Counted from the first letter of the stretch, positions 8,844-32,680 are shown. The stretch: 64,000 nucleotides of DNA from Takakia lepidozioides (GCA_030704615.1 CM060732.1:49352001-49416000); one strand, 5' to 3'. Made by a program: numbers and translations. The notes: generated by a model not told the origin, from the sequence alone.

Positions 8844-9659
8844 TCGGATTGCAATCTGCTGTTAGTACTCAGCACTGGCGCTAGTCCTTTGGACTCGATG
8901 GCGTAGATCTGTGTTTATGTACGATTAGGATACTCCAAGTTCCTAGCTTTGAGACTGTCTGTAGTTGTTCTGCTAAGGGTCTTCATACTCTGACTGCATT
9001 CAAAGACATGGATCATAAGTGAGGGCTGAATAGTGTCCAAAGAGAAAAGGGATCTTTGAGAGCGAGGGATGGCTCAGTGTCATGGAATGTGGAGATCCCT
9101 TCACTGCATGCCCAAAAATTGTGAAGGGACAAAGCTATGTAGTTCATAATCTTGCAGACCACCTCTTGGATGACTTGGTAAAACTCTGAAATTCTTCTCA
9201 TGGGAATGGCATCAAGTTTTGGGTCAAGAGTAGCCCGCCTTCAATTTTGATGATCCTGCTCTTCATAACAAAGCTTTTGACTTTCTTTGCTCAATGTGGA
9301 TTCATTTCCTGGATTGAAGATTGAAGGTCTGTTGGCACTTCCAAGTAGAAGCAAACAGAGCCACTCAGCAAGCATTGCTTCTGTGCTATTTTGCAGGCTC
9401 TCAATGGCCTGCGCTTGGGTTGGGAAGTTGCTTTCAAAAACTTTCACCTAAAGAGGTCCTTCAGTCTCGAACACCAACATGTGAAGTGGGGCACCAGCTA
9501 ATACATTTAAGAACCAGGATTGGACAGGTCATCCACACTCCCAAGTCCTATGCCTAGAAATAACCAAAGACTCAGATCTATCATCTACTCCACTTTCAAA
9601 GCAAGGTAGAGATCATGCTTGCCAGATCACCAACTACAAACCAATTATCACAAAGTTTT

Positions 9660-10088
9660 CATACCAGTCTGGTCTATATAATGGTGGATGTATATTTGTC
9701 CAAATACTGGTATGAGTATGAGTATCATGACCACAATACCCCTTGGTATGAGATCAACTCTGGTATCATCCTTTATGTGTATTGTATTTATTTCACTTGA
9801 TATTTGCTATTTGATAAACTTGTAATTCAAGGTGGATTTAGAAGTAAATATACATAAATACAAATGTATAGGCAAATATACACATAAATTAATATGGTAC
9901 ACATACCAAATGAGGTAGACTGCGGGGGAGTACTGGTATTGTGGCTGGTATGAAAAAACTGATACCAGCCTGGTCTGGTATATGACCAAGTACTCTCCCA
10001 AACGATACCTAATTAGTCTGGTATCTAATACCAGTGCATATACCAGTACTTTAGACCAGTCCTTCACCTATATACCAGTCCAACACTG
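9660..10088. mobile_element. Non-autonomous hAT-like element remnant rich in ATACCAG/CTGGTAT motifs
   Basis: Many ATACCAG/CTGGTAT motifs occur in both orientations and the element ends ccaacactg (rc CAGTGTTGG). Related pieces lie at ~13135-13192 and ~1909-1960. The left end is not defined. Confidence 0.4.
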
Positions 10089-10652
10089 GTATGCACCAAG
10101 ACATAGGAACAAATCCAAATAATGCGTCCACAAATGCTTTCTACTCTTACTTGTTTTATAGGGAAAGGGCAATACGGCTCTTTTACTTAGGCCGCCACCT
10201 TCTCTCTTCTCTCTCTCTCTAGTTGTTGACGCTGTCATAGTCACACTGTCGTCTTTGGCAACGATATCCTGTACTCATAGCTGCCCGAATTTCTCTTACC
10301 AATGCCCCGCATTTTTGAACTTCTTCTATCTGCACTGTTTACTTGCACTTGCATCAGATGCTACTCTGTGATTATCTTTGATGCAGCTTTGCCGGAGCCA
10401 TAAAGACTGTCCTGGCATTACGCTCTAGGTAGGTGAGCAGAACACTCCTAGAATGTTCAATATCAGGGGATCTCGGCTCGGCATCATATCCATACAGAGA
10501 GATGGCAATCAGAGGTTGTGTGAGGGAGAGAGAGAGAGAGAGGGCGAGAGACTCTTGAAGGCAAAATTTTGACGTCCAAGGGAGAGAGGTTGAACGTGCT
10601 CCTCACAAGGGCACTTGCAGTTTTGGCACTCAGCAGCCACAGCGGAGCAGTT

Positions 10653-12353
10653 ATGGAAAGCACGGAGGAGTCGGTGTTGCTGCCTGCACAATCTACGTTG
10701 ATTGCTGTAGCAACTTCAATCGTTCTAATTGCCGCAGTAGTTTATGCCTGGTGGAATCATCCGGACTATGGTAAAAACAAGGGCCCCAAGATCTATCCCT
10801 TGGTTGGCTGCCTGCCTCTTGTCATGAGGAACAGACACAGATTGTATGACTGGGCAACTGAAGAGCTGCAGAAAGTTCCATCACATACAATGAGGGTCGT
10901 GATGCCTGCAGGAAATGTTTTGATAGGAACAGCAAATCCGGCTAACGTAGAGCACATTCTAAGAAGCCGATTTGAGCAGTATCCTAAAGGGCAACTACTC
11001 CAGGACAACTTTTTTGACCTCTTAGGACGAGGAATTTTCAATGCTGATGGAGACCTTTGGAAATTTCAGAGAAAAGTAGCTAGTCATGAGTTCACCACGC
11101 GATCGCTCCGAGAGTTGGTCGTGCAGTCGGTGAATGGAGAGCTCCAAAGTCGCCTTGTACCCATCCTTGCAAAGATCAGCGATGAAGGCAGTACCATAGA
11201 TTTACAAGACCTTCTCTTGCGGTTCGCATTCGACAACATCTGCCAGATTTCATTTGGAGTGGACCCTGCCTGTCTGGATTCCTCGCTCCCAATAGTGCCA
11301 TTTGCTCAAGCTTTTGACGACGCAACTGAGTATAGCACCCAACGCTTTACTGGGTTTGGACTTCTCACTTGGAAATTGAAAAAGGCTTTTGACATTGGGT
11401 CCGAGAGAAAGCTGCGGAAGGCGATAGCTGTGGTCAATGAATATGCCAAAGTTTTAGTCGGAACAAGGAGAAAGCAGCTTCAAGAGGCTACAGGGGGCCA
11501 ATCTAGTGGTGAGCATCTCGACATGTTATCAAGATTCATGCGATTTGCTGATAGTGCAAGTGGAGATATTCCAGGAAGGACTGAACTCGAGCAGAAGGTC
11601 ATTCAGGATCTGAGACACAAAGGAAACGATGACGGGGCTTTCAACAGTAAGGAGGAAATGTCGGATGAGTTCTTGAGAGACGTTGTTATCAGTTTTGTTT
11701 TGGCAGGTAGAGACACTACTTCGTCAGCCCTCGCATGGTTCTTTTGGTTGCTGACTTCCAATCCGCGTGTGGAAGCTGCAATCTATGGCGAAATCGAAGG
11801 GCATCTGCGGGCTAGAGACTCAAAAGAAGAGGAGGATTCAAGCAGCTTGTACACTCAAAATGCATCCTTCACATTTGAGGAGCTGAAAGACCTGCATTAT
11901 CTGCATGCGGCTCTATCCGAATCTCTTAGGCTGTACCCACCTGTCCCAGTTGATTCGAAGGCGGCACTGCAAGATGATGTTTTGCCCGATGGGACTTTTG
12001 TGGCCAAGAATCAGAGAGTGTCTTATAATGTGTTTGCCATGGGCAGAATGGAGAACCTCTGGGGGCCCGATTGTCTGAAGTTCAAGCCCGAGAGATGGTT
12101 GAACGATGGCGTCTTCACTCCTGAAAGTCCATACAAGTATCCTGTGTTCCAGGCAGGGCCCCGCATTTGCCTCGGGAAAGACATGGCCATGATTCAGATG
12201 AAGCTCATAGTGGCTGCACTCATCCATAACTTCACCTTCAGCCTTGCTAGCAGTGACAGTCCACAGTATAACCTGTCGGTTACAATGCGGATCAAGCATG
12301 GATTGCATGTAATTCCACACCACAGAATTCCTTTGCAAATTCTAAAATCTTAA
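10653..12353 (+). CDS. CYP94: Cytochrome P450, CYP86 clan, CYP94-like fatty acid omega-hydroxylase (single coding exon)
   Basis: ATG at 10653, an N-terminal TM anchor, GRGIFNADG..WKFQRKVASHEF, I-helix AGRDTTS, ExxR (ESLR), PERW and heme motif FQAGPRICLG. Confidence 0.92.
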   Translation: MESTEESVLLPAQSTLIAVATSIVLIAAVVYAWWNHPDYGKNKGPKIYPLVGCLPLVMRNRHRLYDWATEELQKVPSHTMRVVMPAGNVLIGTANPANVEHILRSRFEQYPKGQLLQDNFFDLLGRGIFNADGDLWKFQRKVASHEFTTRSLRELVVQSVNGELQSRLVPILAKISDEGSTIDLQDLLLRFAFDNICQISFGVDPACLDSSLPIVPFAQAFDDATEYSTQRFTGFGLLTWKLKKAFDIGSERKLRKAIAVVNEYAKVLVGTRRKQLQEATGGQSSGEHLDMLSRFMRFADSASGDIPGRTELEQKVIQDLRHKGNDDGAFNSKEEMSDEFLRDVVISFVLAGRDTTSSALAWFFWLLTSNPRVEAAIYGEIEGHLRARDSKEEEDSSSLYTQNASFTFEELKDLHYLHAALSESLRLYPPVPVDSKAALQDDVLPDGTFVAKNQRVSYNVFAMGRMENLWGPDCLKFKPERWLNDGVFTPESPYKYPVFQAGPRICLGKDMAMIQMKLIVAALIHNFTFSLASSDSPQYNLSVTMRIKHGLHVIPHHRIPLQILKS

Positions 12354-12486
12354 AAGATCCTTCAGAGTTGTGTCACATACCTCTTCAGTTTGTTCCACTT
12401 CCACTGCAATTGTGTGGTTTGTATGTTTTGGAGCTTTGTTTCTGCCTTCGTCCTTCTCTTTGTCATCCCTTTTGTGTATATCTTAA

Positions 12487-13124
12487 CCCTTAAATGCCCA
12501 CCACGCCCGTTTTGGGCTTTGGGTGTAGAAAATTCTGAATAACTTCTTACATTCTCAATGGAATTGTCTGAAAAAAAAATACAGTGTTCTTGGGCACCTG
12601 GCACACCAAGATTCATTGCCCCATTGCCTCCCCATTGCCTCGGATCTGCCAAGTTGCAAAGAGGTCTCATCACGCAAGTAGGGGGGTTCACGATTTGATA
12701 AAGGTAATTCTCGTTGTTTCATTCTTCACACGAGAGAAACATGGGATTTTCCCAGGTTTGACCAAGTGGCAACATCACATGCATTGGCCAAATGCAATTG
12801 GATACTTTTTGGCTTGTTGGATGAGGGATCTCAAGGGGATGAAACCCTGCTAATTCCCATTTGATCCCGTCACTCAAATCTTACCAAAAATGGATATGTT
12901 TCTCAAAAGGGCCCCCATAATGGGGCCCACATTCAACAGTGGTATTTTGTGGATCTGGGGCTGATTGGCCTCAAATTTGGCAGGTGGATGCAGTAGGAAG
13001 GTACGCACCTAATGTGCGGTCAAGTTCTTTAAGAAGTTAATTTTCTGAAAGTTACACCAATAATTCACTTAAGGGGTCATGTTTTTAAGACAAAAGTCAA
13101 ACTATGGCACTGGGCGTTTAAGGG
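12487..13124. mobile_element. piggyBac-like MITE inserted in the CYP94 3' region
   Basis: TIRs CCCTTAAATGCCCA / TGGGCGTTTAAGGG match at 13 of 14 positions and the left flank is TTAA. The element is absent from the paralogous pseudogene 3' region. Confidence 0.55.
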
Positions 13125-13293: not shown

Positions 13294-13985
13294 GAAATGA
13301 AATGAAATGGTGCTTTATAACGTCCGCGGAACGCTCATAGAGCTTATGGGACAAAATGGAAAGAAAAACATGAGAGAAAACAAGAAACCAAAGTCAGAGA
13401 TAGGAACTATTGTTCGAGTGATTGTCTAAGGGTGAATGCCTCGTGCAGGTAGGCTACCAAGCATTTCTGATCTTCGTAGTGAAAGACTTCAGTGAGAGAT
13501 TGGGTTCCATGGAATAGAAAATGGAATCTCCCACGGATCTCATAGTATAGAGGGCAATAGAAGAAGAAGAGTTCTTCAGTTTTAATTTCCTGGTTGCGCC
13601 CTGTGCAAGCTGGACAGAGGCGGTCCTCCCGCTGCAGGTTTTTCTATCTGTCAGTCTCTATCCGTAGGTTGTGGGAGCCCACCCTAAGCCTCCCTAAAGC
13701 CCTCATAGGAGAAGGAGATAAAGAGGCCGAAAGGTAATTGGGCCGCAAGATTCTATCATCTCGAAGTTTCTCGATAGAAATGGAGCTTTGTCGTGAGGTT
13801 GGGTAACTTCCAAGTTCTCCTGACACGTAGCTCCATGAGCTCCTTTCTAATGAGTTGGTTGCGGTCATGCTTGGATGTGATGTCCACCCCTTTTGGGTTC
13901 GCTGGCAATAGTGAAGCAATAGAGAGTCCATGGCGTTCAAAAAAGGTATCCACACAAGCATAATCGGAGAAAGACCGCTGGAAGG
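13294..13985 (-). mobile_element. 5'-truncated non-LTR retrotransposon (RTE-X-like LINE) 3' end
   Basis: Degenerate ORF2 C-terminus LRVGSHNLRIET..REDRLCPAC..EELFFFYCPLYYEIR, followed by a short 3' UTR and a (CATTT)3 tail. A second copy lies at 23572-23912. Confidence 0.75.
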
Positions 13986-14473
13986 GCCAAAGATTTATTT
14001 TAAAATTACGAGGAAAAAGTAACCTCATAGAAGTGTGTTAGTTTCTAGATAAATGTTTCACTGTTTTTCTGCTTTTCATATTACTAGTGTGGGATCAATT
14101 TGTTAATTTATACCATGTTTGCTGTTTTTCAATGTGTATATATGTTGTGCTTCATGAAATTTACATTGTCAGCTTGATTGAGGTCTTCAAAATAGAGGAC
14201 CCCAATCAATTTGAATAGATGACCTCGAGAATTTACTGAAAATGGACCTCATGCAGACTGCAGACGTAATAATTTGTTTCATTCTTCTTTCCAATGGGCC
14301 AATGGATCTGTGTCCCCATTGACAAGTTGATTTTGTTCGTTGTCCCTCATGGCTCTCATGTATGTAAGTGAAATGTTTATGCTATAGTTTGATCTCAACC
14401 ATCATCATGTGAGGATGTTGCATGCATGTCTATTTTGTAATTTGTAGATGCAAATGTGGGAGGGAGCATATAG

Positions 14474-14960
14474 GTACAGTAGTAGACAAGGATATCTGCC
14501 ATCCCTAACAACGATTTCTTCTGGTGCAACCATGCAGCCATTGTGTGTTTCCTCTCATCACCCGACTGGACTTGTGTAGCAAGGATCTTGAAACTTGTTA
14601 ACATCCATATTTTGAGCACTGGTTCATCACAACCAGCTACCTGGTTTCAAATAGTTGGATTTGATGTGGTAGTATAAGATCACTTTGAGCAGTTGCACCT
14701 CCTCTTTCTTATATGTGTGACTATCATGTAGATTAACCTAGTTTGTTGGGTTGCACATATACCTCATATATTGTCTTACCTAATAGTTGTTGTCTCTTGT
14801 GAACCTAGCAGTACATGTGATGCAAACAATGTATTTTTGTGCATCTAAAGAGGATTGCATGCAGGAAACTACGAGGCCAACACATTACCATGTCCTAATC
14901 AATGAGAACAATTTCACAGTTGATGATTTGCAACAATTGACAAACAATCTTATGTATACT
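14474..14960 (+). pseudogene. Argonaute PIWI-domain fragment (two consecutive exons, AGO4/6/9-like)
   Basis: Exon 14474-14545 reads GTVVDKDICHP[fs]NNDFFWCNHAAIV and exon 14865-14960 reads [32 protein letters not shown]. Each follows an AG acceptor at the usual plant AGO exon boundaries. Confidence 0.85.
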
Positions 14961-14986
14961 CTCTAAGTTATATACATTGGTGATGG

Positions 14987-17900
14987 GTGAAATTGCCATT
15001 TGCAAATTTCATGATCAAAGGCAAGCCTTCACAATGCACTACAACAGACAAAGGTACTTCAACATTACTCGCTCAATATCAAGATTTCAAAGATGTATTC
15101 GAGAAAAAAAATGCAGACATATTGCCAGAACATCGACCTTATGACTGTGCAATTGAGTTACAAGAATGAGCCCAACCACCATTCGGCCCAATCTATAACT
15201 TATCCCAGACGGAGTTGGCTGCATTACGCGAATACATTGATGAAAATTTGTCAAAGCACTTCATCCGACATTCCAAATCACCCGCGGGGGCGCCTATTTT
15301 GTTTGTGAAGAAAAAAGACGGATCATTATGCATGTGTGTCAACTATCGTGGTCTCAACAAAATCACAATCAAGAATCATTATCGGTTGCCGCTGATTTCT
15401 GGGCTTTTCGACCAGCTGGGACGAACGAAGATTTTCACCAAAATCGACTTGAGATGAGCTTATAACCTTGTACGGATAAAAGAATGAGACGAATGGAAAA
15501 CAACTTTTCGAACAAGGTATGGACATTTTGAATACAGTGTTATGCCTTTCGGTCTTACAAATGCTCCAGCAATTTTCCAACATATGATGAATGACATCTT
15601 TCGAGAATTTTTAGATGACTTTGTAGTCATCTATTTGGACGACATTTTGATATTTTCACAGAACGAAGAAGAACAAGGCCGCCATGTACGCCGTATCCTT
15701 GATAAATTTAGATAAAGATGACTATATGCCAAGTTGAAAAAATGTTTTTTTCATCAATCTGAGGTCGAATTTCTGGGCTACATTATTTCCGACATAGACG
15801 TCTTTATGGATCAGAAGAAAATATAAACCATGATCGAGTGGATTAAACCAACTTCGGTCCGAGTTGTTCAATGTTTTCTGGGTTTTACAAATTTCTATAG
15901 AATTTTCATCAATGACTACTCCAAAATTGTTGCACCATTGACACGACTCACAGGAAAGGACAAATTTGTATGGGACGAGAAGGCTGACCAGACATTTGAA
16001 AGGCTGAAGCAGGCATTTACAACGGCTCCAATATTGGTACATGCAGACCCATCTAAACCATTCTTCTTAGAAGTAGATGCATCGGACTTTGCACTTGGCG
16101 CGGTACTCTCACAAAACGGTACAGATGGCCGACTCCACCCTGTTGGTTTTCGGTCTCGCAAATTTTCCGCTGCGGAGATCAATTATGAAATCCATCACAA
16201 AGAACTTCTAGCGATTATCGATGCTTTTGAGGAGTGACGTCATCTATTGGAGGGAGCTAAACATCAGGTCACTGTCTATATCGAATACAAAAACCTCAAA
16301 TATTTTATGAGTGCTCGTGTTTTGAATCGACGTCAAGCGAGATGGAGTATGTCACTAGCAAGGTTTGATTTTGTTATTACCTACCATCCCGGACATATTC
16401 AAGGAAAACTAGATGCTCTTTCTCGACGATCGTATCTTGCGCCAAAGGAAGGGGATGCAGTTTTTGACCAACAGAAATCCATCATCTTAAAATCAGCAAA
16501 TCTCCAATTGAATATACTATCAATGTCCACCTATGACGATGCCGAGATCATAAAGGAGATTCAGGAAGCACTGGAGAGCGATCAATTCGCTATGACACTA
16601 CGAAGTCAACTAAATCGACCTCGAGACAACCCACATGTTACAAACGACTTCGAGTTCAAAGATGACTTACTTTATTTCAAGGAACTTCTCTATGTACCTC
16701 CAGGACCTACACGACTTCGAATTCTTCAAACATGTCATGATCTTCCGGCTACATGACAGTTCGGCTTCAACAAAACAATAGAATTGATATCCAAGGACTA
16801 TTGGTGGCCGCAGATGTGGAAACTCGTAAAAGAATTTATAAAATTTTGCGACACGTGTGCTAGAGCGAAGGGACCACGACATCGGCCTTACGGCTTTCTT
16901 CAACCATTATCCATTCCCAAGGGTCCATGGTCGTCCGTGTCTATGGACTTTATTACGGACCTTCCAATCTTCAAGACCACGGATTCGATCCTTATTATTG
17001 TAGATCGTTTTACGAAGATGACACATTTCATTCCATGTAATAAGACAGTTACCGGCGAGGAAACTGCAAGACTCTTCCTCAATAATATCTACCGCATTCA
17101 TGGACTCCTGAAGGACATCGTATCTGATCGAGGACCACAGTTCATATCAAATTTCTGGAGGGGATTATTTCACATATTGGATACTAAGATCAACATTTCT
17201 ACAGCTAATCATCCACAAACTGATGGTCAAACCGAACGTGTAAACCAGATTTTGGAGCAGTATCTTCGTTGTACGATAAATTATCACTAAGATAATTGGA
17301 CGGACCTTCTGTCATTGGTTGAGTTTGCCTACAACAACACTATACATTCTTCGACCCAACAAACTCCATTTTTCTCCAATTATGGTCATCATCCTCGAAC
17401 AAACCTATTCCACATGAAGACTGTTGGAAGCCCTGCTGCAGAAAACCTTGCTACTCATCTTGCTACGATTCACAAGGAGCTTACATTCCACCTCGCAGAA
17501 GCTCAAAAACAATACAAGGAGTATGTAGATCAACGTCGCCAACTTCAACCCCAGTTCAAGGTCGGAGTCGCATGAACCAGATACATTCGAGTTGTCGCTT
17601 ACCCAGCTACCAGATCAGCCGTTCCGACTCTCACGACCTTCAACATCACGCCGACGCTCTCGAGACGATGGGCCACCAATGCGACGCGTACTTCCTCGTC
17701 TGGACCCCGTACGACGGTAAGTGGAGCCTACTCGAAGTCTGATAATTCTGTTGGAGGTTGAGGCTTCGAACTCAGAGGACAACAAAATCATGTTTGAAGA
17801 CAGTTTCGAAAATCAGAATGCTCAAATCACTGCGTGGTCTCAAGTTCAAGGTGTTGGACACTATCGATGGTTGCAGGGACCTATAAATCATTTGAGTCAA

Positions 17901-18647
17901 GAACGAAGAGCCGAATACTTGGCAAGTACCATTCGTTGGATTTTGGATTTTCTTCAACTTTAAGCAAGTCCAAGATTTTACCGCTCCTCGAGGAACTCGG
18001 CGCTAGAGGAGGGGGTGATGTCACGGACATAGCCCAGAAGAACTTACCACGAATAAATACCAAAAATTACCAAGTTACCATGTTACCAAAAGTTACAATA
18101 ACTTACCGTGATTTATTATGATCTACCATGATTTACCATTACTTATCAAGTTACCGGGAGTTTACCAAATTACCAAGAGTAACTTGGGAAACTGCTCAGG
18201 AAGCTTCATTTGGAGGAAACTTCTCTATCAAGACACCTCATTTGTTTAAGGAAACTTCTCCATCAAGAAACCTTTGTTTAATCTTGGAAACTTTTCCAAC
18301 AAACAACCTCCATAGGGGAAGCTTCTTAGGGAAGCTTCTTAGTAGCCAGCATATATAGGAGGCGAGACTTGACACTCTTCAGTCTCGCCAACACCAGTTC
18401 AAGCTACTCTTGTTTCCAATTCCCAGTACCTTAGCCCAGTTTCCAGTATCTGGTACTCCAGTCCAGTTTCCATTCCAGTATTCAAGTCGTGTTCCAATAT
18501 CTTGTACTCTTGTTCATTGTTATAAAGATCGTCTTAATTTCTATTTACTCATCGTGCATTCGGCCACGCCGACCTTGACTTCTTGTCTAGCCTTGTACCT
18601 CTAGTCTTATCTCTTATTTGTGTTCAGTCATGTTCTCGTCCTTGACA
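14987..18647 (+). mobile_element. 5'-truncated Ty3/gypsy LTR retrotransposon (Tcn1-like chromovirus): RT-RNaseH-integrase, PPT and 3' LTR
   Basis: A single pol frame with in-frame stops carries [44 protein letters not shown] and HPQTDGQTERVNQ. PPT agaggagggggtga precedes the LTR at 18019-18647 (TGTCA...TGACA). Confidence 0.92.
18019..18647 (+). repeat. 3' LTR of the gypsy element
   Basis: TGTCACGG starts directly after the PPT and the LTR ends TTGACA. It contains internal TTACC-rich repeats and a TATA-like tatatagg near 18352. Confidence 0.8.
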
Positions 18648-19246
18648 CTATGATGACATGGACATTGCAACATATGACTGTTAGTATTCACGACTACGCG
18701 TGGCGATTGCTGGTTACCTAAGGAATGTCTATGTGGAAAATGCAAAGATAAATAGATGAAATAGAACGAGATGTGACAGCAAATGACGACGTGTCTACAT
18801 ATCATTGCTCGCATGGTTGAAATATTATGGTGTATTGGATGCAAGTGCATCTAATGACTGCAAATGATACGACTTCGAGGGTGACGTGGACTTATTGGTG
18901 ATTTATTTTAAACTCCACAATTATATTTTAAATTCATGTGATTTGAAATATATATTAGTGATTAACTACTCATTTAATGACTATGAATATATTTATATAT
19001 ACAAATATATAAAGCTAAAAATACCTTCACATATTAACATGGAATATAGAATTATTTTATATATTGTTAGGGTGCAAAACGTTCAAAAACTTCAAAAGGT
19101 TGGCTCGAATTTAGGGTTGCTAGGTCGCAGAGTGCAGGGCTGCGACTTAGCATTTTTGGGGGTCTGCGTCTTCTTCTTAGTGCCAAAACATCGTGATAGC
19201 AGGCCGTGTTTCAAACTCTACGAGTGCACCGTGGCCGCTCTCACAG

Positions 19247-19406
19247 ACCTATCCGACATTACCTGACTATAGACACAAACAACACACACAAGAGGTCATA
19301 TTGCGTTCATGGTCAGTCGAATCCTCCATGGGTCAAGACACAAGGTCGAGGACAATGTGGTGAGGGCACCTTACTCTTCGACCTATTTCAGCCTGTTTTG
19401 CCCTCT
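19247..19406 (+). pseudogene. OSB-type PDF-motif exon fragment (5' part)
   Basis: After acceptor tcacag it reads TYPTLPDYRHKQHTQEV..[fs]VHGQSNPPWVKTQ, resembling the OSB NP..PDFKHK..GEALW...PPWV motif. It is cut at an insertion starting TGTAGTG. Confidence 0.7.
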
Positions 19407-22400
19407 TGTAGTGTGAATGCAAGGGAGTGACATTCAAATTTTTGTTGCATTTCTACAAAGGAAGGGCCCTGGTACGAGTGTGAAAATAGGTTGAGTTGTC
19501 CCTGCGATTTATTCCATCCATGTTTCTAAGTTGCATCATGGGGACGATGGGGAACTCTTGGCCAGGATGAAAACTTTTAAGCGTCTTGCAAATTTATTTC
19601 ATCTATGCAATGGACGGAATTCATCCCTGCCTACATATTATTTCATGGGCACACTGTGATCATACTTAGCCAAGATGAAAGTGACTAAGTCGTGTGACCA
19701 TGCGTATTTTCATCCGGAGGATGAACGGATTACATCCATGCTTACTGGGAGACTCACGGGAATGGTCAAGACCTATAATTGCATTTCTGAAAGAGTAGTC
19801 ATCCATCACTACAACAGATCCTGGCTTTTACGTCTGCTATTTTCCAGTCGTATCAGCCTTTTATGACTGTGTCAGATCATAGTCGGGTGATCAGTACATC
19901 CTCCACTCCTCGATCTCAACATCGTGCCCCCGCCTAAACTCATGGTAATCATCCATGGGCGGCCCCGGAAGGTGCTGAAACAGCCCCTTCCATGCCATAA
20001 AACGCGTAAACAGTTGTAGATTGCACATTTGCTGCAAGTCACACCAACTATCAAACTCTTGGATAAAATCATCCAACTCAATGGTGCCCATCGCCCCAGA
20101 GTACCTTCGTGGCCCCTTGGTAGCTCCATACATCTCCTCCATTGTGTCCCACAACAATGGCAAGGAAACAACTTGCACCGCCGGTGTGAGTCATCCTGAT
20201 TCACAATCCGAATCAGAACCTTCCGTAGAAGACACAGGAGGTGAAGGTGGCCTAAATAACACACCTCGTCTCGTATACCGCTAGTATCGCTAGTGCTCGT
20301 ACCGGCACTTTCCCCAGCAACTAGTGGCACCTCCGTGTTGACAAACTGACACTCAACCAGTCATGAATATGTTCCTAAACCCCTCTCCACAAGGTAACCG
20401 GGTAGAGAACTTGATGCAGCTTATGGTTTGGAATACTAGGTTCTTAACATAGCCTGCACATGCACCTGCACCTGCATCCACCGCAGGCACTTCCATGGTT
20501 GCCCGGTCATCACCTCCAACCTCGCCATAGGAGAAATAAAAATGGTCTTACTGGTCATCAACCCAGCCTCACCATTGACAGAATACTCTAGGGTTGAATT
20601 GGCGATCAAGCCCAAGTCAACCACCTATAAAATCAAACGCCCACACAAAACTAGCATGGTGCAGAATCAAGCATGCAGGTGTGGAGGGGATCCAAACACA
20701 AGAATGAAAACAACAATTCCTCCACACCAAAAACAACTCCACAGTGTCGCTCCTCCAACCCAGCCCAAACCCAGACTGACTCTTGCCTCAACCTACGCAA
20801 AGGTCTCGGCCTACAGAGAAGGTGGAAAACTACGAGGAAGGTAAGCTAAAACAATGCCTATCCCCAGCACGCTCTCATCCCAACACCCTCTTTTTCCCTC
20901 TCTTCTCACTTGCATAACCATGAGAGCATCCTGTAGACACTCCTCAAACCGCCCTCCACGAGCTCATGAAACTTGGCCTCCAAGGCCCCATGCAAGTCTC
21001 CACAGGGTCCGCCAATGCCTCCTTACGTCCACCAGCCATTCCTCAGAATGGAACCACCTCAGGAAACCACGCCATTCACTGAAGGTTAAAAAATGGAGCA
21101 AATAGAGGTACATATAGGCCCCAACAACATTCTGTCCAAAGGAATTACCTGCAGGCTGGTCTCCCCCATAGTTAAGAATTGGGTTGAAAACCCGAAAAGA
21201 CTACCTGTAGGGAAGTAATCCCCTTTGTTAAAACGCAACAGGGAGGCAATTCTGACTTTTTTGCCGGATCAGCTAGCTCAAAACCGTTGTTCTTCAGAGC
21301 CCAGCCTCCCCATCAAAGTCCCACGAAACCAGTGAAAAAAATAATAATAAAAATAAAATAAAATAAAATAAATTTGTTTTTCACTATGCCTGTTCGCGGC
21401 CTTCCGTGGCTCTAACCGCCACGACTCCTCACAGCCCGCCCTAGGCGCTCGTTGGCCACGAGTTGCCCCGTGATACCCCGTGGTACCACGCCCACGAGCC
21501 TTCAGGGCCCGCCATCCCCACGATCTGGTCACCGTGCCAACCCGTGGTGTCCGTACCACTGCTTCCCACGGTCACTGTCAACGGTCACGGTCAATAGTCA
21601 CGGCCTGGGCTTGTGGTATCTCGTGATACCGCCCCAACGGCCCATCACGGCCACTGTTTCCTGCGTTCCCTGGAACTCCCAACGAGTTCCCATGCGTTCC
21701 TGGGCGTTCCCACGCGTTCCTGAGCTCTCGCCGAGCTATGGCTTCTGCAAAGCCACCAGACCTGCTGCCATGCTCTCTTGGGCTCTCACGACCCACCAGA
21801 GGCACCCTAAACTCAACAAGCAAGCAATATGCTGCCCAACAAGCTCCATTTCTTCATGAAGCTCACAAAAACGAATCTGAAAATACACACCTTTACAAAC
21901 TTGGTGCACCTGCATTTCTCATGCATATCCCATGGCTCTAGGGCGCCTTGTTGCTGCCCTTTCAGCCCCGCTCTTGCCACTCCAAGAGCCCTTACACTGC
22001 TGAGTTTTAGATTGAAACTCCAACTTAGCACATGTTTCACAAGTGCACTGATTTGCATACAAGAGGGACCAGCCCCCTCTCTTCACTTATACCTTTTCAT
22101 GAGCTTGGAGCTGAAGCTCCCAACGGGCTGCGATGCATCCCCTCGCAGCTCCACCATTCGGCTGCTCCTCATCTACCCGCAACAACTAGTTTCGGCCAGA
22201 AATACCTGGAGCTGATCATATCATCTCCAACCTGCAACATGCTAGCTTCCCATGCGCAGCCCACATTTCTGTAGCTCCTTAACTCGGCCTGCAGCTGAAG
22301 AAGACGATCACCAGTTCGCCCACTCGTGGCCATCATCTTCTCCGCTTCACACTAGAAGCCCAAACTTGGTTGCCATAGCGTTGAGCTATGCAACGCCGCT

Positions 22401-22715
22401 CTTCAACATAGGCTACCCGCCTCTCTATCCATTGCAAACCTACAACCTGTTCACCTTTGCATTCTATCCACTTTGGATAGACTCATGCACGGATCCCTGC
22501 ACTCTAGGCTGAACCGCTTCTCATGATCTGAAAACACAAGTGCTACAACTAACTCGAACATGGCACTCACAGACTCAAGTTCATCTTTCTTGAGTGATAA
22601 AGAAAGAATGATACAAGCACACAAGCTCTCTCAAACTCACACACTTGCACATGAAAACATCACTCATATTAAGTCGAGCCAAGTGCATCCCATGCCATGG
22701 GGAATCCACACTACA
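19407..22715 (-). mobile_element. Degenerate LTR-retrotransposon-like insertion with a gag remnant
   Basis: Termini are TGTAGTGTG (19407) and CACACTACA (22715). The minus strand at ~19870-20180 encodes IELDDFIQEFDSWCDLQQ..AWKGLFQHLPGPPMDDYHEF, which is gag-like. The element may be composite. Confidence 0.55.
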
Positions 22716-22864
22716 GCGCCATAGCTAGACGCGGTGCTCAACTCGAGAAAGATGAGCCCACCGCGATCTGCCATGAAGATAACAACGCCAGGTACCCAAA
22801 CATATATTGGCCCCTGGATTGACACTTGGGTCAATCCCAAATGTCAATATATAAAAGCTAGCTA

Positions 22865-22997
22865 TTTCCTAGCTAATTTCACACTAGTGGTAACATAACT
22901 TGATAAGTTATTGAAACTCAAATCCAGCCAATCCAACAGCGGAAATGAACCCAATGAAGATGGTATCTGCCCCATAAGTTGATTGCCATTTAGAGCT
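22865..22997 (-). pseudogene. LRR receptor-kinase exon fragment
   Basis: After acceptor tgtacag it reads ALNGNQLMGQIPSSLGSFPLLDWLDLSFNNLS, a plant extracellular LRR consensus. Confidence 0.75.
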
Positions 22998-23307
22998 CTG
23001 TACACACATAAAGCAAACAAATAAACATTCAGCATCAAATCCACACAATATCTCAATAGAAACTTCCAAGTGTGCACAAGTCGTAGCTGGGGTCATCATA
23101 GCATGCCATCTACATGAGCTGCAGTGTCATCCGCGGGTAGACAAACTGATTCTACCGACGACCATATACTCAACTTGTCATTCGACTCTGCAGACCAGCC
23201 AAAGAAACTTGACGCTTATTCCCTTCTTTGAATGAGAAGAAGATCAACCAATGTGTGTGCCGAAGCTCCTCATGTGCTGAAGTGAAAGCTGTTGAGAGAA
23301 ATAATAC

Positions 23308-23420
23308 CTCATGCGTGTAGCTCTTGAGGGGGCACAGTGAAAGATCGACCAAGCCCGAGGTCCACAATTTTGAGGGTAAGGCTTTCCTTATCCACCAGCA
23401 AATTTTGCGGCTTGAGATCC
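23308..23420 (-). pseudogene. B-type cyclin-dependent kinase exon fragment
   Basis: An AG/GT-bounded exon reads DLKPQNLLVDKESLTLKIVDLGLGRSFTVP[+1 fs]LKSYTHE. DLGLGR..TVPLKSYTHE is typical of CDKB. Confidence 0.85.
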
Positions 23421-23571
23421 CTGCCATCTCCCCATGATTCGGTCATTTGATGTGACGTGCAGTAGGCATTGCAATGAAATGCAATGCTAAGATCAGACGG
23501 AGAACTACGCAGTAGTGTGGTAGGAATAAGCAATAAAGAAATCTTGGAGTGTTTCAGAAGAACAAATGAAA

Positions 23572-23912
23572 TGGTGGGTTCCCACAACCTGCGGATAGAG
23601 ACTGGCAGATGGGAAAACGTGCAACGGGAGGACCGCCTATGTCCAGCTTGCATAGGGCGCAGCAAGGAAATTGAAACTGAAGAACACTTCTTCTTCTACT
23701 GCCCTCTGTAATACGGGATCCGTGGGAGATTCCACTGTTTATTCAGTGGAACCCAAACTGTCATTGATGTCTTCCACTATGAGGATAAAAAATGCTTGGC
23801 AGCCTACCTGCACGAGGCCTTCACCCTTAGACAATCGCTAGAACATTAATTGTGCTTTCTGGATTTGTTCCTCTCTCATGTTCTTCCATTTTGTCCCATA
23901 AGCTCTATGAGC
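23572..23912 (+). mobile_element. RTE-X-like LINE 3' fragment (second copy)
   Basis: Encodes VGSHNLRIETGRWENVQREDRLCPAC..EEHFFFYC and shares its 3' UTR (ttgtcccataagctctatgagc) with the 13294-13985 copy in opposite orientation. Confidence 0.75.
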
Positions 23913-24099
23913 TTTAACAAATTTAGCCCACAGAAAATTGTTGTAAAAAAATGATTCCAACCTACAAATAATAACGAACCCAAGCATTGCTGGTGCAGTG
24001 ATTGCCACAGTTCCTTATTCATAACAAAGCTACAGTTGAGAACACTCCCTGAAAAGATGGACAAATTTCTTCACATCGTACATTAAGAAAAAGCCACAC

Positions 24100-24620
24100 C
24101 TTGCGATTGCGGTTGTCCCACCATCGTGAAGGATCTTTCACAAACTCATGCCAGCTCTGCTTCGTGCTGCAACTTCAGGGCTAAGTCTGATGAGAGCGCA
24201 AGACAGGCTGAAATAGGTCGAAGAAGAAGGTGCCCTCACCACATTGTCCTCGACCTTGTGTCATGACCCATGAAAGATTAACCAAGAGGACCTCTTGTGT
24301 GTGTTGTTTGTGTCCGTAGTCAGGTAACGTCGGATTGGTCTGTAAGAACCACCACGGTGCAACTGAGCGGGCAGAGATTGAAACACGACCTGCTAAGACA
24401 AAGCTGACTCTCCCAAGAACCTTGTAAACATCAAGAAGAATACCAAATCATGGTCCTAACAGGAGCCGAGATTCCACATTTGCAGGATGGACAAACTTCT
24501 TCACAACGTACATTAAGAAAAAGTCACACCTTCCTATTGCTGTTGTCCCACCATCGTTAAGGATCTTTCAAAAACTCATCCCAGCTCTGCTCCGTGCTGC
24601 AAATGCAAGTATGATGAGAG
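24100..24620 (-). pseudogene. OSB-type PDF-motif exons (continuation, inverted)
   Basis: Exon piece 24620-24530 reads QSWDEFLKDP*RWWDNSNRK|gt. Exon 24339-24100 reads ag|TNPTLPDYGHKQHTQEV...QSWHEFVKDPSRWWDNRNRK|gt with internal stops. Confidence 0.75.
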
Positions 24621-26282
24621 TGTAGTGTGAAAAGAAGGGCACGAATCCCTTCTGTAAAATCTAAATCTGGGTTCGTAGTGCAAAGAAGCTTGCTGCCCCA
24701 GCCCACTACACCCTAGTGAAGACAAGTTTGCTACCCTAAATCACTATCCTCAATCATTGACCCTGTACTGTTCATGACCAGAGACCAGATGCCCTCATCC
24801 ATGCCGCAACGGAAGAGAAAACATGGATGGGACTGGGAAGCTTCTCCATTTTTATCTCTCAGCTTACAACTGGTTATCCCTTCGTTCTTCCTTTTTCTGT
24901 GCAGCTCTCCCCTTTGCCAGATTTCTTTTCTCACCGTTGCATGACAAAATATTCCCTAGGTATCATGTAGAACACTGCACCTTTCCTACATGTTGTGTAA
25001 TTACACCAAGGCAACCCATCTAGCAGGACCAAATACAGAATTTGTGAGTTGATATCTCAAGGATGCCCCACATTCCCTGTTTGGTCATTTTCTCTTCCCA
25101 AAGAAGGCCCTCCATTCTGACTGCTTTCAGAGACAATTCAGGTTTGTCAGTCAGCGATAAAGAGCCCATTATCTACATCTACATTCTACACCATCCTTAC
25201 CTTTTGCATTCAGCTTTGAACCAACAGAGTTCCCAAACTAAATCCCCTCATTCTGGGATCAAACATCAGGTTTCAGCTTCAGAAATGCAGCTACACTAAA
25301 CGGCTTAAAATAATTTTCCACTTCATCCCTCTGATGTATGCATGCCACATAAATTTAGGATACCCTAGTTCTCCAATGAAACACCATCATCCTCATCTTT
25401 CTATTGTTAAAAAGGCAGCTAACCCTACTGGTTTGTGCTCTATTGTGCTCAAAATTGCATGTACATTTGACATCAAACTTCAATGCAACATTGAGTCCAG
25501 ATTCATGCTACTGGAAATAGATGATCTGAAGCTAAAGAAACATCATACACTCAATGACTATGGTGGGGCTGCATCTGCCCTCTAATCAATATTCCCACAG
25601 ACATATGCATCCTCTCACATCCTCTCTACAAATCTCCCTGCTTTGAAGTCAGACCACCTCCATTTCATTTCTCCAAAATTTTATTTCCTACATCAGTCTT
25701 GCTTGAGAGCTCCTAAGTCCAAGCAACAACAACTATTCCTGAGTGAAAGAAGCAACTATTCCTAAGTCTAAGAAGAGCACAGGCATCCACGAACTTAGCT
25801 GTCTTATACTCCAGGTGAAGCGGTGGGTTTGCCTGCCTGAAATGGCACCTCACCATACCCTATCAGCAGCTACCCTACTCCCCTTTGTTGTCTGAATCGC
25901 CGGCATTCTAAAAAGATCACGCACATAAGAGCCCTGCACCGCCTCAGCATTCCATCCTCCATATATTCAAAGTCCATTAAATGCCCACGACACTGCCCTA
26001 TCTACTGGCAGCATCACTGCCGTTTGGTGATTAGCTCCTCTATCCCACCATCTGTGCGAATCTACCCTAAGATAAGACATTATCTATGACATGAAAGCTT
26101 CAACATCTAAGTACCTCTTTCTCTAGACATTCACATCCCCTAACTCCCTATTTACAGATATCTTGCATCACCATCCGCCATGGAGAGAATATGCAAGTGC
26201 ATGTTGATGAGACAAAAGATACTCTCTCGTGGTCATGGGAGGCGAGGTGTAGAGCGGCCAATTTGCACCGCAAGCAAAAATC

Positions 26283-26513
26283 CGGGGATCAAATTGGACA
26301 AAAGCAGAAGCGCTGGTCCTTATAGAGTATGAGAAACGGCTAGAGTATGACGATCACCACCACCCAAACATAGTCGCCACCGAAATATTCATCTATGGAG
26401 ACGCGTGGAAAGTCATAATGGAGGGGTGTGATACAGTTGCAGGATTTAGAGTGAGGGATGTGGAGTAGATAATTAACAAGTGGGACACATTGCAGAAGCA
26501 GTTCCAAAATTAA
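26283..26513 (+). pseudogene. Trihelix / Myb-SANT-like DNA-binding domain fragment
   Basis: Reads RGSNWTKAEALVLIEY..AWKVIMEG..RDVE*IINKWDTLQKQF, with three spaced tryptophans and one in-frame stop. Confidence 0.65.
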
Positions 26514-27079
26514 CCAAAAGATTGTTTGAGCTCCAGCGGAGCTAGTCAGTGGTGGGGGTTGTCCAAGGTGGCAAAAAATAGGTTTAACCAAATCAATACC
26601 TGGCTTTATCCAATTTTGCTTGTCCCAAGAGCCACCATTTCTAATCCACAGTGGAATGGCTACAATTCCTCTAAATTGCAGGTCCAACAGATTTTTCCAC
26701 CTATGATTTCTTTGTATGTAATTACATGGGGGTCAAAATTTAAAAATGGAAAAGGAAAAATTTCCCTCCAAATGAAGTACTTTTTTTTCTACAAAATTTC
26801 TAAAACCCAACGGTAGATGTGTGTAAGGTGAAGTGGTTTACACTTTTTTTAAATGTTACTAACTTTATTAATTTTACAATTTGGGCATGTTTATCCGCCA
26901 CGTCAGCAGTCAACAAGCCCTTTACAAGCCCAAAACCTGACATAAATACCTTAGATATTTTCTGTAGGTGGTAGCTTTTGATTTTTCTTAACTTTTCATT
27001 TTGCATCATATTGTCAGCCCCTTATTCATCTTTGCTCTATTTCTATTAATTTATTATGTCATGGTTCGTGTTTTTTTTG

Positions 27080-27113
27080 GGGCCCTGCGTGCGCAGAGCC
27101 CTCTAGAAACTAG
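27080..27113 (+). mobile_element. Helitron-type 3' terminus
   Basis: GC-rich hairpin GGGCCCTGCG-tg-CGCAGAGCCC (one mismatch), followed 8 nt later by CTAG and then T. Confidence 0.65.
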
Positions 27114-28867
27114 TAGCTAGTAAGTGAGTAAGTAATAAGTGAGAGGGGAAAGAGAGCTCTCTTTATATACCCTCATAGGGGGTGGGACCTTCTAGAAGCC
27201 CGCAGAACCCTCAGCGGTGGGACCCTTCTAAGAAGGTTGGCTCTACCAAGTACACTTCTCCAAGCCTAAGGCCGCTGCTGGTCCCACTGCCGCACCATCC
27301 ATGTATTAATGTCATGGCATGGGGTGCGCAATTTTCCGGGCCCTCTCCCAGCCCTCTTCTTAGCCTTAATACACCCTTTTTCCGTCCCCTAATCTAATCC
27401 CCACACCCCCTTTCAAACCTCGGCCTTATTGGAGACAAGTCCTTTGTCATAAAAAGCTTCTGGAGTGGCCCCATCAGAGGAGATCCACTAAAATTAGGTG
27501 GAAGTGGAAATTCACCGATTCAGGTAGCTTGGGAAATTAAGGGTTAATCTATAATTTGGATTAAATTTGCTAGTAATGACGTGGCTTAGTTCATCTCCAA
27601 AAAACCCATGATGATGGATGGCTAGCGAGTTCCCACTCTTGCAAAAGAAATCCAGATCTTTCTCATGGATTTTTAGACACATTTGTCGCTTTCGCAAGAA
27701 ACCCACAGATGGCAAAGCTGTGATTTCTTCTAGTGATAGCCCTTCAAGTGTCGAGTAACACCGTACTTTTAAATGTATAGAGGAAGGCCCTACGTGGAGG
27801 GCGCCCTTTGAATTTTATGCCCAGGGCGGATACTAGGGGTCAAGGGCCGCCTGACACGAGGGTCTTCCTCTGCGTAAAGAAATGGGATGATTTCTTTGAG
27901 TTTGAATACACTGGAATAAATGATCAAAAGAAATGGGACTAGTGAAGGAAGAGATCTTGGAGGTAAAAGATAATGTCGGAAGTGTGTATTACACATAGTG
28001 TAATCGGCACTATGCATTATATTTTTTTGTAATGCCCTTGTACTCGTGGCTGGCTATTACGCTGTGTAATGAAACAATATTAACGAAGAGAAATCAGCTT
28101 CAGTTCTATACGCTTGCTTTGGCAATGTCCACATTCTCTGAAAGAGGTTAAACCTCACAATTGTGGGCCTTCATTGATGGCCGAAGATCCCAAGGATGAC
28201 GGTCAATAGAAATGAAATGAAATAGAAACCTTTAAAAAAAATAAAAAATAAAATAGAAAGGGGAGGACTCAAGCCCTTGTTATCAATAATTGAAGGGAAA
28301 AAAAATTAAAACCCTTACAGGCCCCGCATGCCGCCATGAGGCCCAACTCATAGTGAACCGTGAAGATAATCCAAAGAACAATAAGTTAATACCAGAGCAG
28401 CGAGATTGCAGAATGCAATCATTCTGGAACATTCTGTATTAGGGAAGGGTCGCTCCCAAGGCCCTTCCTGAATTTGAGAGCACCGGCAATGAGGGCGGAG
28501 TGAAAAACTGGGAAATTTCTCTTTCCCGCTCCTTGCCCCGCAAATCGGGGGACCCTTCCAAACGCGGAAGGTACTTCCAGCCATTCTTTTAGTGGCGAAT
28601 AATCGCTAGATTTCGACCTCCCGCGGGTCTTGGCGACAGGGGTAAAGGGAAATGAGGCTGAAAAATCATCACTTTTCGCCAAAAGCTTATCTGATTGGAC
28701 CACCTTTTGCTAGAGGGGCCGCCACAGGGAGGCACATGGCGCCATATTGAGTGAAGACAGTTTATAGCATAGGAGCCAGATCCCACCGACCACGTGCAGG
28801 ACATCGCCGCATTCTGAGTGCGCGGGAGGACGTGGGGCCAGCTATGTTGCCCATTTTTGTACATATA

Positions 28868-29820: not shown

Positions 29821-30523
29821 CCGTCCCTGGACAACCGTTTAGGCATTTTTGCGCCTAATAATAAAATCAATTAATCAGAAAATTAGGCATGTTTTGAAAA
29901 CAATTTCTTAAACTAGGCATCTTCATGCTATAATTTTTTAGAATTAGGCACATGAGAAGAGAAAACATTTATTTTCTTAAGAATAAAATTACAAAATAGA
30001 CACCCAATGCCCATGGGCCCTTCCAGGCTCCAGCTAGCTTTCATTTCATTTGAAACCCTAAAAATGCCCCTCTTTGTTGTACGCGGTGCTCCAAGGCTCA
30101 AGCTGGCACATGCAAGCTCTCCCTTCGCTCTCACAGTAGTCCACACTAGTGTAGGCACGTTGGTATAGGGCTTTGGTACATTGAAGGCACGCTGGTTCAG
30201 GGCTTCGATACATTGGTCATTGGGTACACTCGTTTTCATATTCGTATGCAGGTGCATGGTGAAACCTCTTACACAATGGTACTCCTGAGTTGTGGTAGGT
30301 TGGTAGGCTAGTTAGTTCCGCACGCATATATTTGTATTGATTTTTGTTCAAAGAAATTTTGATCTTATTACAAACAACATGAGAAGAGGCTTGCAAGTTT
30401 TTTGGTGGAAATTTTGGGCATTAGGCACTTTGGTCCCATAATTTCCAAAATCTGAAAAATTCACAGAATTGATTAGGCACTTTCATTTTGAATTAATTAT
30501 CGCCTAAACGGTTGTCCAGGGAC
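29821..30523. mobile_element. Tc1/mariner-like MITE
   Basis: Perfect 22-bp TIR GTCCCTGGACAACCGTTTAGGC at 29823-29844 and 30502-30523, with TA at the left and internal aattaggca repeats. It sits inside a repeat whose empty form (ggaaggTActtcc) is at ~28566-28578. Confidence 0.75.
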
Positions 30524-30778
30524 TTCCCTTAAATCGGGGGAACCTTGCGGCCAGGGAGGTTCCTTGAATTACAAAGAAAAAACTTTGCCAGTGTTTTACA
30601 GAATCAGGGGTGACACAAGTTGGGGGTGGGGGTGGACCCTGGACACCCAGCTATATACACAGGGCGATTGATCAGTAATACGCTGAAGGACCTGTGACAA
30701 GAGACTTCGAAGAGGGCAGAAGAATAGAGCGCGTGTCTGTTGTGCTCCTCACAAGTAGCTGTGCAGGTTGGAGCAATT

Positions 30779-31853
30779 ATGGAAAGCACGGGGGAGTCGG
30801 TGTTGCTGCCTGCACCTAGTTTATGCCTGCTGGGAATCATCCGGACTGTGGTAAAAGCAAGGGCCCTAGGGTCTATCCCTTGGTTGGCTGCCTACCGACT
30901 CTTGTCATGAGGAACAGACATAGACTGTGACTGGACAACTGAAGAGCTGAACAAAGTTCCATCACATACAATGAGGGTGGTGACGCCTGGGAATGTTTCA
31001 ATAGGAACAGCGAATCCGGCTAACGTAGAGCACATTGTAAAAACCCACTTTGAGCATTATCCCAAAGGGCAGCAATTCCAGACATCTACTTTGACCTCTT
31101 CGGATTAGGAATTTTCACAGCTGATGGAGACCCGAGACCTTTGAAAATCGCGGAGAAGAGTAGGTAGTCACGAGTTCACCACGCGGTCGCTCCGAGAGTT
31201 AGTTGTGAAGTTGGTTCACGAATAAACCCATCCTTACAAAGACCAGCGATTTGCATGCGAAGGCAGTACCATAGATTTACAAGTTTTTCATGCAGTTGGG
31301 TTTGATGACGCAACTGAGTATATCACCCACCCCTTTCGTGGGTTTGGTCTTTTCACTTGGAAATTGAAGAAGGCTTTAGACATTGGGTCCGAGAAAAAGC
31401 TGCGGGAGGTGATAGATTGCATGCGGCTCTATCCGAATCTCGTAGGCTGTACCCACCTATCCCAATTGCCACGAAGGTGGCAATGCAAGATGATGGTCTG
31501 CCCGACGGGGTTTTTGTCGCCAAGAATGAAAGGGATTCTTCTAACGTGTTTGCAATGGGCAGAATGGAGAATCTCTGGGGGGCCGATTGTCTTGAGTTCA
31601 AACCTGAGAGATGGTTGAACGATGGCGTCTTCACTACTGAAAGTCCATACAATTGTCCTGTGTCTCAGGCAGGGCCCCGCATTTTCCTCGGGAAAGACAT
31701 GGCCATGGTTCAGATGAAGCTCATAGTCGCTGCACTCATCCATAACTTCACCTTTGAACAGCCACGTATAGCCTGTCGCTTACAATGCGGATCAAGCATG
31801 GATTTCATGTGACTCCACACCGCAGAATTCCTTTTCAAAACCTAAAATCTTGA
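30779..31853 (+). pseudogene. CYP94 pseudogene, duplicate of 10653-12353
   Basis: Colinear high identity from ATGGAAAGCACG to the stop and into the 3' UTR (~32050). It has frameshifts, a deleted TM anchor, a ~470 bp deletion spanning the I-helix, and heme Cys>Phe (GPRIFLG). Confidence 0.92.
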
Positions 31854-32680
31854 AAGATCCTTCAGAGCTCATTCAGAGTCGTCTGAAATACCTCTGTAGT
31901 TTGTTCCAATTTTACTCCACTGCAATTCTGTGGTTTATGTACAGTATGTTCAATGGAGCTTTGTTTCTGCCTTCATCCTTCTCTTTATGATCTCTTCTCT
32001 TTAGATATTATTACCCTCTTTGTGTGTCTGAACTTGTAGCCTCTAGGACTTGGCAGTGTGTCTACAAGCAAACACGGATGACGTCCCCCAATCCTGGACC
32101 AATAGCTCCGAGCTGTCACATGTCGCGGACTACTGATTCGACCAGAATATACAGTTCACGAATTGTGGCGAGCCCATATGTCCGAGAGCTATGAAGACGT
32201 AAGTGATGATCCGTTCTTATTCATCCAGGCCGGGTACCAAGTGACCAATGAAAGATACGAGTCTTCCAACAAGCGTTTGATCTTATATGCAAAGCGCAGG
32301 GGTACTAGCTTACATGAGCAAGAAACAAACCATTGCAACAATGAATATCACCCAAAACAATGATGTGAACCATTTTGGGATACACGAACGTCAATGTGTC
32401 CATTTACTTCAGCACCGATTTAACGGAGCCTGAAAATTATAGAAAGATCAGCCCTCGGAAGCTGATATCTACGGAGAGAAACTAGCTGCTCGCATCATTA
32501 AATCTGATTGGTAGAATATATGATCAACAGGTACTAATCTCATGAAATATTGAAGTAAGACTGCAGTGTTATTCAATATTTTGCCCTCTAAGCTCTGAGA
32601 TCGTTTGCATGGGGTAAGTCTTCATTGTCTTTGGAGATGCTTCCTCTGGGGAGCAAGTCCCGAGAATCCCAATTGGAATA

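Follow-up and report, generated by a model that had tools for sequence, protein, structure and literature searches.

Gene pieces among mobile-element remnants in Takakia lepidozioides: one Helitron or a mosaic of several events?

Introduction

Among the closest described counterparts of the locus considered here, a stretch of Takakia lepidozioides DNA in which short pieces of unrelated genes lie among the remains of mobile elements, are the Helitrons. A canonical Helitron has TC at its 5' end and CTRR at its 3' end, with a GC-rich hairpin roughly 10-12 nt before the latter, and it inserts between A and T (PMC4683698; PMC11417382). Helitron2/Helentron elements (HLE2) have terminal inverted repeats of 12-16 nt, a stem-loop after the right repeat and insertion between T and T, and Sphagnum magellanicum is a moss from which such elements have been reported (PMC11417382). 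We analysed a stretch of 64,000 nt, called the window below and counted from its first letter in all coordinates. A preliminary description of this DNA had proposed that pieces of five host genes are the cargo of one large non-autonomous Helitron, co-oriented once an internal inversion is undone.

On balance we lean towards a different account, in which the region is a non-functional mosaic put together in more than one event, and a canonical Helitron is one of several candidates for what carried the gene pieces. This mosaic would fill an 18-kb island enclosed by an intact cytochrome P450 gene and a decayed tandem copy of that gene. It would mix AGO, CDK, leucine-rich repeat (LRR) and PDF-motif gene pieces with parts of at least five mobile elements, namely two tails of long interspersed nuclear elements (LINEs), a 5'-truncated Ty3/gypsy element, an isolated gag-like piece and a Myb piece of probable Harbinger type.

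Results

Unspliced pieces of AGO, CDK and LRR genes

The AGO, CDK, LRR and PDF-motif pieces are DNA-level, unspliced copies of unrelated genes and not decayed local genes. The preliminary description had reported degenerate, intron-bearing fragments of these kinds, and their positions and strands hold good: the splice borders, frameshifts and stops can be read directly. The AGO piece comprises two exons of the PIWI region on the plus strand, separated by an intron of 322 nt. Exon A (14448-14542) is degenerate. It lies between an AG acceptor (14446-14447) and a GT donor (14543-14544). A single additional base at 14506 throws it out of frame, it contains a stop, and its segments GTVVD..ICHP and NNDFFWCNHAAI are split over two frames. 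Exon B (14865-14960) matches the Pfam Piwi domain (E=4.8e-9) and residues 877-917 of Arabidopsis AGO10 (E=6.6e-10), and its homology breaks off in mid-exon, beside a truncated gypsy element. Motifs including HP-NNDF lead us to assume that the piece is AGO4-like.

The CDK exon lies on the minus strand (~23486-23308), covers the catalytic loop to the activation segment, and has a GT donor. It matches Pfam Pkinase (4e-5) and CDK2 (E=1e-4), aligning to the latter from the AYCHSH region via the catalytic loop (RDLKPQNLL) to DLGLGR, the equivalent of DFG. Its decay is seen in two frameshifts and an insertion of ~17 nt. By its motifs it is presumably of the CDKB subtype. The LRR piece, also on the minus strand, is a single exon of 98 nt (22997-22900), bounded by an acceptor AG and a donor GT, that encodes one and a half plant-type repeats (Pfam LRR_1, 9e-4) and matches plant LRR receptor kinases in PDB (GSO1, ERL1 and MIK2). 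A search of the open reading frames (ORFs) of the island disclosed no additional AGO, CDK, LRR-kinase or PPR exons around the gene pieces.

PDF-motif exons and a split repeat unit

An array of PDF-motif exons with a period of 430 nt occupies 24712-24056 on the minus strand, where 24056-24196 and 24486-24620 form a direct repeat of 86-90% identity. Its four exons, b0 (~24690-24630), a1 (24596-24530, with an in-frame stop), b1 (24339-24283) and a2 (24166-24100), all have AG and GT borders that can be read directly. A further piece of the unit, consisting of a b-type exon (19247-19303) with an intron on either side, lies on the plus strand at 19197-19414 and shares 81-92% identity with 24395-24185 of the other strand. 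The array was also compared with the window exon by exon (tblastn). The plus-strand piece had been taken for the first OSB piece; it is not an upstream first exon, being the same part of the unit as b1 together with its introns.

The identity of these exons rests on the motif. No Pfam or PDB model and no PDB match was found for them, and a length-limited word search returned no candidates. The OSB protein of Physcomitrella has one PDF motif only (PMC4166229), against 2.5-3 units here, and no OB-fold or PPR remnant accompanies the exons according to the Pfam search of the island's ORFs and a search for PPR remnants. What stands of the earlier assignment is the presence of PDF-type exons with AG/GT borders; an OSB donor is not supported, with no other domain nearby and a differing number of units. 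To judge from the sequence, the exons need not derive from an OSB gene.

PDF unit 2 is split between the two places. When 24196-24056 (minus strand) is joined to 19197-19414 (plus strand) and aligned with unit 1 (24620-24185, minus strand), the two agree at 86.8% identity across both halves, and the lone gap, of 90 nt, falls exactly at the joint. This match fits a unit that an inversion, breaking near 19197 and 24056, divided in two with some loss at the break. Such an inversion is plausible on the alignment; alternatively, the two halves may represent an inverted partial duplication. Undoing the inversion brings the CDK and LRR exons onto the plus strand, like AGO, and leaves the PDF array on the minus strand, so full co-orientation of the fragments is not reached. 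The preliminary description had instead re-inverted the interval from 22.7 to 24.7 kb and thereby placed every fragment on one strand. Nothing marks either of those positions as a breakpoint, and the pair that does fit, 19197 and 24056, leaves the PDF array antisense.

The candidate Helitron terminus

The sequence at 27080-27113 on the plus strand has the layout of a Helitron 3' end: a GC-rich hairpin (27080-27101) with a 9-bp stem containing one mismatch stands 12 nt ahead of the end, which is CTAG (27110-27113) followed by T. A second CTAG follows at 27117-27120. The hairpin and its CTAG are present as had been described; as the mark of a Helitron they are no rarer than chance. Shuffled sequences lead one to expect 0.5 occurrences per 64 kb of a 9-bp stem with one mismatch and CTRR followed by T within 16 nt, and the window holds two other such sites. 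The DNA fold (-8.5 kcal/mol) is 1.6 standard deviations better than that of shuffles (z=-1.6), and among 200 shuffled sequences 12 gave a fold no less stable. No second copy of the hairpin occurs in the window.

A 5' end, A followed by TC, had been called for in the preliminary description. No recognisable Helitron 5' end emerged from a pattern scan, whose lone match lies inside the gypsy pol region; the patterns used are those that we take to be typical of such ends. Apart from the features described here, the island contains 69 further ORF pieces of at least 60 aa, and none of them yielded a Pfam domain. They include no RepHel remnant (Helitron_like_N or PIF1), which would not be required of a non-autonomous element.

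Termini of other kinds were sought around the array as well. The sole inverted match that brackets the region is an exact one of 11 nt (14039-14049 and 27102-27112), of which ~1.4 are expected by chance for the 100 nt tested; the stem-loop is on its wrong side, its right flank is G, and its flanks show no target duplication. The best pair of CACTA-type ends has 15 of 20 matches and no duplication, and no long or other terminal inverted repeats bracket the array above the level of chance.

A Myb/SANT piece with transposase-linked relatives

The last fragment before the candidate terminus is an intronless Myb/SANT piece of trihelix type (26259-26630, plus strand; tblastn E=3e-25). It lies in a single frame with two in-frame stops. 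Among 1.8 billion (1.8e9) representative proteins it has 21 relatives, with Pfam Myb_DNA-bind_4 and Myb_DNA-bind_5 domains. Three contigs (L001, L002 and L006) show its closest relatives arranged tail-to-tail with a transposase (Plant_tran/DDE_Tnp_4), as in two-gene PIF/Harbinger transposons; relatives lacking a nearby transposase were met in Logan contig L005 and in Ceratodon, where none lies within 8 kb. The pairing in three contigs makes the piece more likely to be transposon debris than a host trihelix exon, and it probably derives from the Myb gene of a PIF/Harbinger element, as its sequence relatives suggest. No Harbinger transposase remnant was found in the window, nor were terminal inverted repeats or a TTA/TAA duplication found around the piece. 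Of the five fragments that had been put forward as host exons, then, the AGO, CDK, LRR and PDF pieces stand, and the trihelix piece, with its Harbinger-linked relatives, is probably not a host exon.

Retroelements among the pieces

Two 5'-truncated non-LTR tails share 83% identity and have their exact 3' end in common. LINE1 (13330-14037, minus strand) lies before the AGO piece, and a feature search of it points to zf-RVT. LINE2 (23568-23915, plus strand) lies between the CDK and PDF pieces and has AACAAAT on both sides (23561-23567 and 23916-23922). This 7-nt duplication indicates that LINE2 entered a pre-existing CDK/PDF junction; it is a later insertion.

The Ty3/gypsy pol fragment (14984-18015, plus strand) retains reverse transcriptase, RNase H and integrase in that order (RVT_1, 9e-17; RT_RNaseH_2, 5e-32; Integrase_H2C2, 2e-12; rve, 4e-7). 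It closes with a polypurine tract (18005-18015) followed by TG, the start of a presumed 3' long terminal repeat (LTR; provisionally 18016-19190, plus strand), of which the window holds no second copy. The element shows no gag, protease or 5' LTR, and there is no direct repeat of LTR size in the window. Its start is 25-80 nt from the point at which the homology of AGO exon B is lost. A truncated gypsy element abutting a truncated AGO exon points to a deletion that removed parts of both, and not to a clean nested insertion.

An isolated gag-like piece of 83 aa (19879-20127, minus strand) has 120 relatives (P0142-P0261) at 60-80% identity. One of them, in ENA contig L007, lies 3.4 kb upstream of ORFs with RVT_1 and RNase H. 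The relatives come from the liverworts Calypogeia and Marchantia and from many metagenome contigs, belong to no Pfam family, and are unusually conserved for a gag region. In L007, moreover, a 95-aa ORF between the gag-like ORF and the reverse transcriptase, on the same strand (9753-10040), has a precomputed Pfam DNA_methylase match, and the element there may be a retroelement with a cytosine methyltransferase.

Preceding the gag-like piece on its strand, a strongly strand-skewed stretch of 2.7 kb (20128-22850) is GC-rich (0.46-0.51, with a GC skew of -0.14 to -0.25). A Pfam search of 22 ORF pieces from it gave no match. Possibly the stretch and the gag-like piece belonged to one retroelement, of which the former would be the leader or an LTR. 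The later invasion by LTR elements and LINEs that the preliminary description envisaged is therefore borne out for LINE2 by its 7-nt duplication; it is not for the gypsy element, which lacks its 5' half and an LTR pair, nor for the lone gag-like piece of 250 bp.

The genomic setting

With a GC content of ~0.44, the window represents gene-rich DNA of a land plant. On the left the island is bordered by an intact, single-exon, CYP94-like P450 gene (10653-12353, plus strand; Pfam p450, E=5.4e-67), whose closest relatives in a protein search are moss CYP94D proteins at 53-55% identity. On the right, 20 kb downstream, stands the decayed copy (30770-32017, plus strand), which is 80-96% identical to 10644-12490, has three internal deletions and extends from ~60 nt upstream of the ATG to 137 nt past the stop. 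Direct repeats with this 20-kb spacing were first taken for LTRs enclosing the finding and were resolved as the two P450 copies. Searches with Rfam and ARAGORN gave no match.

A MITE-like element (miniature inverted-repeat transposable element) of 700 bp lies at 29823-30523. Its ends are perfect inverted repeats of 22 nt (29823-29844 and 30502-30523), and subterminal repeats of TAGGCA type occur in large number inside it. A 38-nt motif containing a hairpin stands on either flank of it, with another copy at 28537-28574. An inverted repeat pair, 34 kb apart and 78-99% alike (9313-9508 and 43684-43852), probably represents two copies of a small transposon. An intact, single-exon PPR-DYW gene occupies 44842-47097 on the minus strand, with an open frame of 752 aa and a DYW end; the direct repeats of 303 nt inside it (45622-46527) correspond to the PPR triplets. 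No PDF leader exon was seen elsewhere in the window.

Discussion

Our findings lead us to lean, with little to spare, towards a non-functional mosaic of several events. The gene pieces would have come by transduplication, either captured by one or more DNA transposons or copied in during break repair, and the insertion of retroelements, along with deletions and a single inversion (~19197-24056), would then have remodelled the island. Two observations weigh against this account. The candidate terminus, 450 nt past the Myb piece, has the canonical 3' form in every formal respect. In addition, undoing the inversion together with the gypsy and LINE2 insertions leaves the AGO, CDK and LRR pieces co-oriented and close together, an arrangement that suits a single capture array.

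One competing account is that of a single large non-autonomous canonical Helitron on the plus strand with its end at 27113, which took up every fragment and afterwards suffered insertions and rearrangement. We consider such an element unlikely, though less so than the other explanations that compete with the mosaic. Its 3' end fits the published definition (PMC4683698; PMC11417382), the fragments retain their introns, and LINE2 did arrive later. Against it stand the frequency at which the terminal motif is expected by chance, with two more instances in the window, and the unexceptional stability of the hairpin; the lack of a 5' end and of any RepHel remnant in the searches described above; the PDF array, which is antisense even when the best-fitting inversion is undone; a final cargo piece that is probably a Harbinger Myb fragment; and gypsy and gag-like pieces that are not clean nested insertions.

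Patches of filler DNA are mostly shorter than blocks of several exons with their introns. If the fragments were filler, copied from scattered templates during the repair of double-strand breaks with no transposon as carrier, then the two exons of AGO and the four of PDF would form blocks longer than most such patches. Other features of the island suit this origin: no piece exceeds 660 bp and the shortest has 98 bp, their orientation is mixed, their junctions adjoin truncated elements, and the searches showed no terminal inverted repeats or CACTA ends. We rate it as improbable, slightly more so than a single Helitron. A little further down the scale is the idea that the PDF, CDK and LRR cluster (24712-22900, minus strand) was carried as cargo by the retroelement represented by the gag-like piece (20127-19879), within its leader or LTR. 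Here the cluster does stand next to the skewed stretch of 2.7 kb, and this in turn next to the gag-like piece, all in succession on the minus strand, but neither LTR boundaries nor a second LTR were found, the search for a tRNA-Met primer-binding site returned a site with two mismatches, at the level of chance, and the gag-like family is represented by only 83 aa. The adjacency would survive an inversion between 19197 and 24056, so that such an inversion discriminates neither way. The notion that each fragment is what remains of a complete gene once at this very place seems to us the most far-fetched of all. The P450 pseudogene shows that genes have decayed locally within the island, yet this would require that, within 12 kb, each of five unrelated genes was reduced to 0.1-0.7 kb, and the ORF and PPR searches described above found no more AGO, CDK, LRR-kinase or PPR exons around the pieces.

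The mosaic also invites a functional reading, in which the island would serve as a source of small RNAs against host genes, with small interfering RNAs acting on the PDF-PPR-DYW family or on AGO4. Transcription across the inverted PDF arms (19197-19414 and 24185-24395), which are 81-92% alike and separated by 4.8 kb, could yield a hairpin RNA, and it might take in the AGO4-like piece as well. If it were true, this reading would amount to a transposon counter-defence, to which rice miR820 and DRM2 reportedly offer a parallel. We regard it as very improbable.

For annotation, we recommend masking the island as sequence of transposons and pseudogenes and calling none of the AGO, CDK, LRR and Myb pieces in it a gene. 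Nor does a lone hairpin with CTAG suffice to call a Helitron in the T. lepidozioides genome. The locus adds one further example of the duplication of gene fragments at the DNA level in a seed-free plant, which is a routine annotation result. It would carry more weight if it belonged to a family of Helitrons bearing fragments of a silencing gene (AGO4) genome-wide, or if the PPR-DYW family of editing factors were the target of small RNAs made from the two inverted PDF arms.

Among known systems, the non-autonomous Helitrons of maize and other plants that carry gene fragments (HLE1) resemble the island in their arrays of short exon-intron pieces from unrelated genes and in a 3' hairpin ~12 nt ahead of a CTAG end adjoining T. 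They differ in that the island has no 5' TC end that could be found, its pieces are of mixed orientation, its terminus is statistically unremarkable, and one item of its supposed cargo is probably a piece of a transposon gene. HLE2 elements are comparable in being rolling-circle elements known to bear gene pieces in seed-free plants, whereas the marks that define them, namely inverted repeats at the termini, a stem-loop that follows the right one and insertion between T and T, are absent here. The short, degenerate, intron-bearing gene pieces in a transposon-rich island also recall transduplication by Pack-MULE and Pack-CACTA elements, from which the array is set apart by its lack of long terminal inverted repeats, CACTA ends and target duplications. 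The two-gene PIF/Harbinger transposons, which encode a DDE transposase and a Myb/SANT protein, are a likeness of another kind. Of such an element the Myb domain alone would survive here, with neither a transposase nor inverted repeats nor a TTA/TAA duplication, and what links it to them is its Myb family and the relatives that are paired with a transposase.

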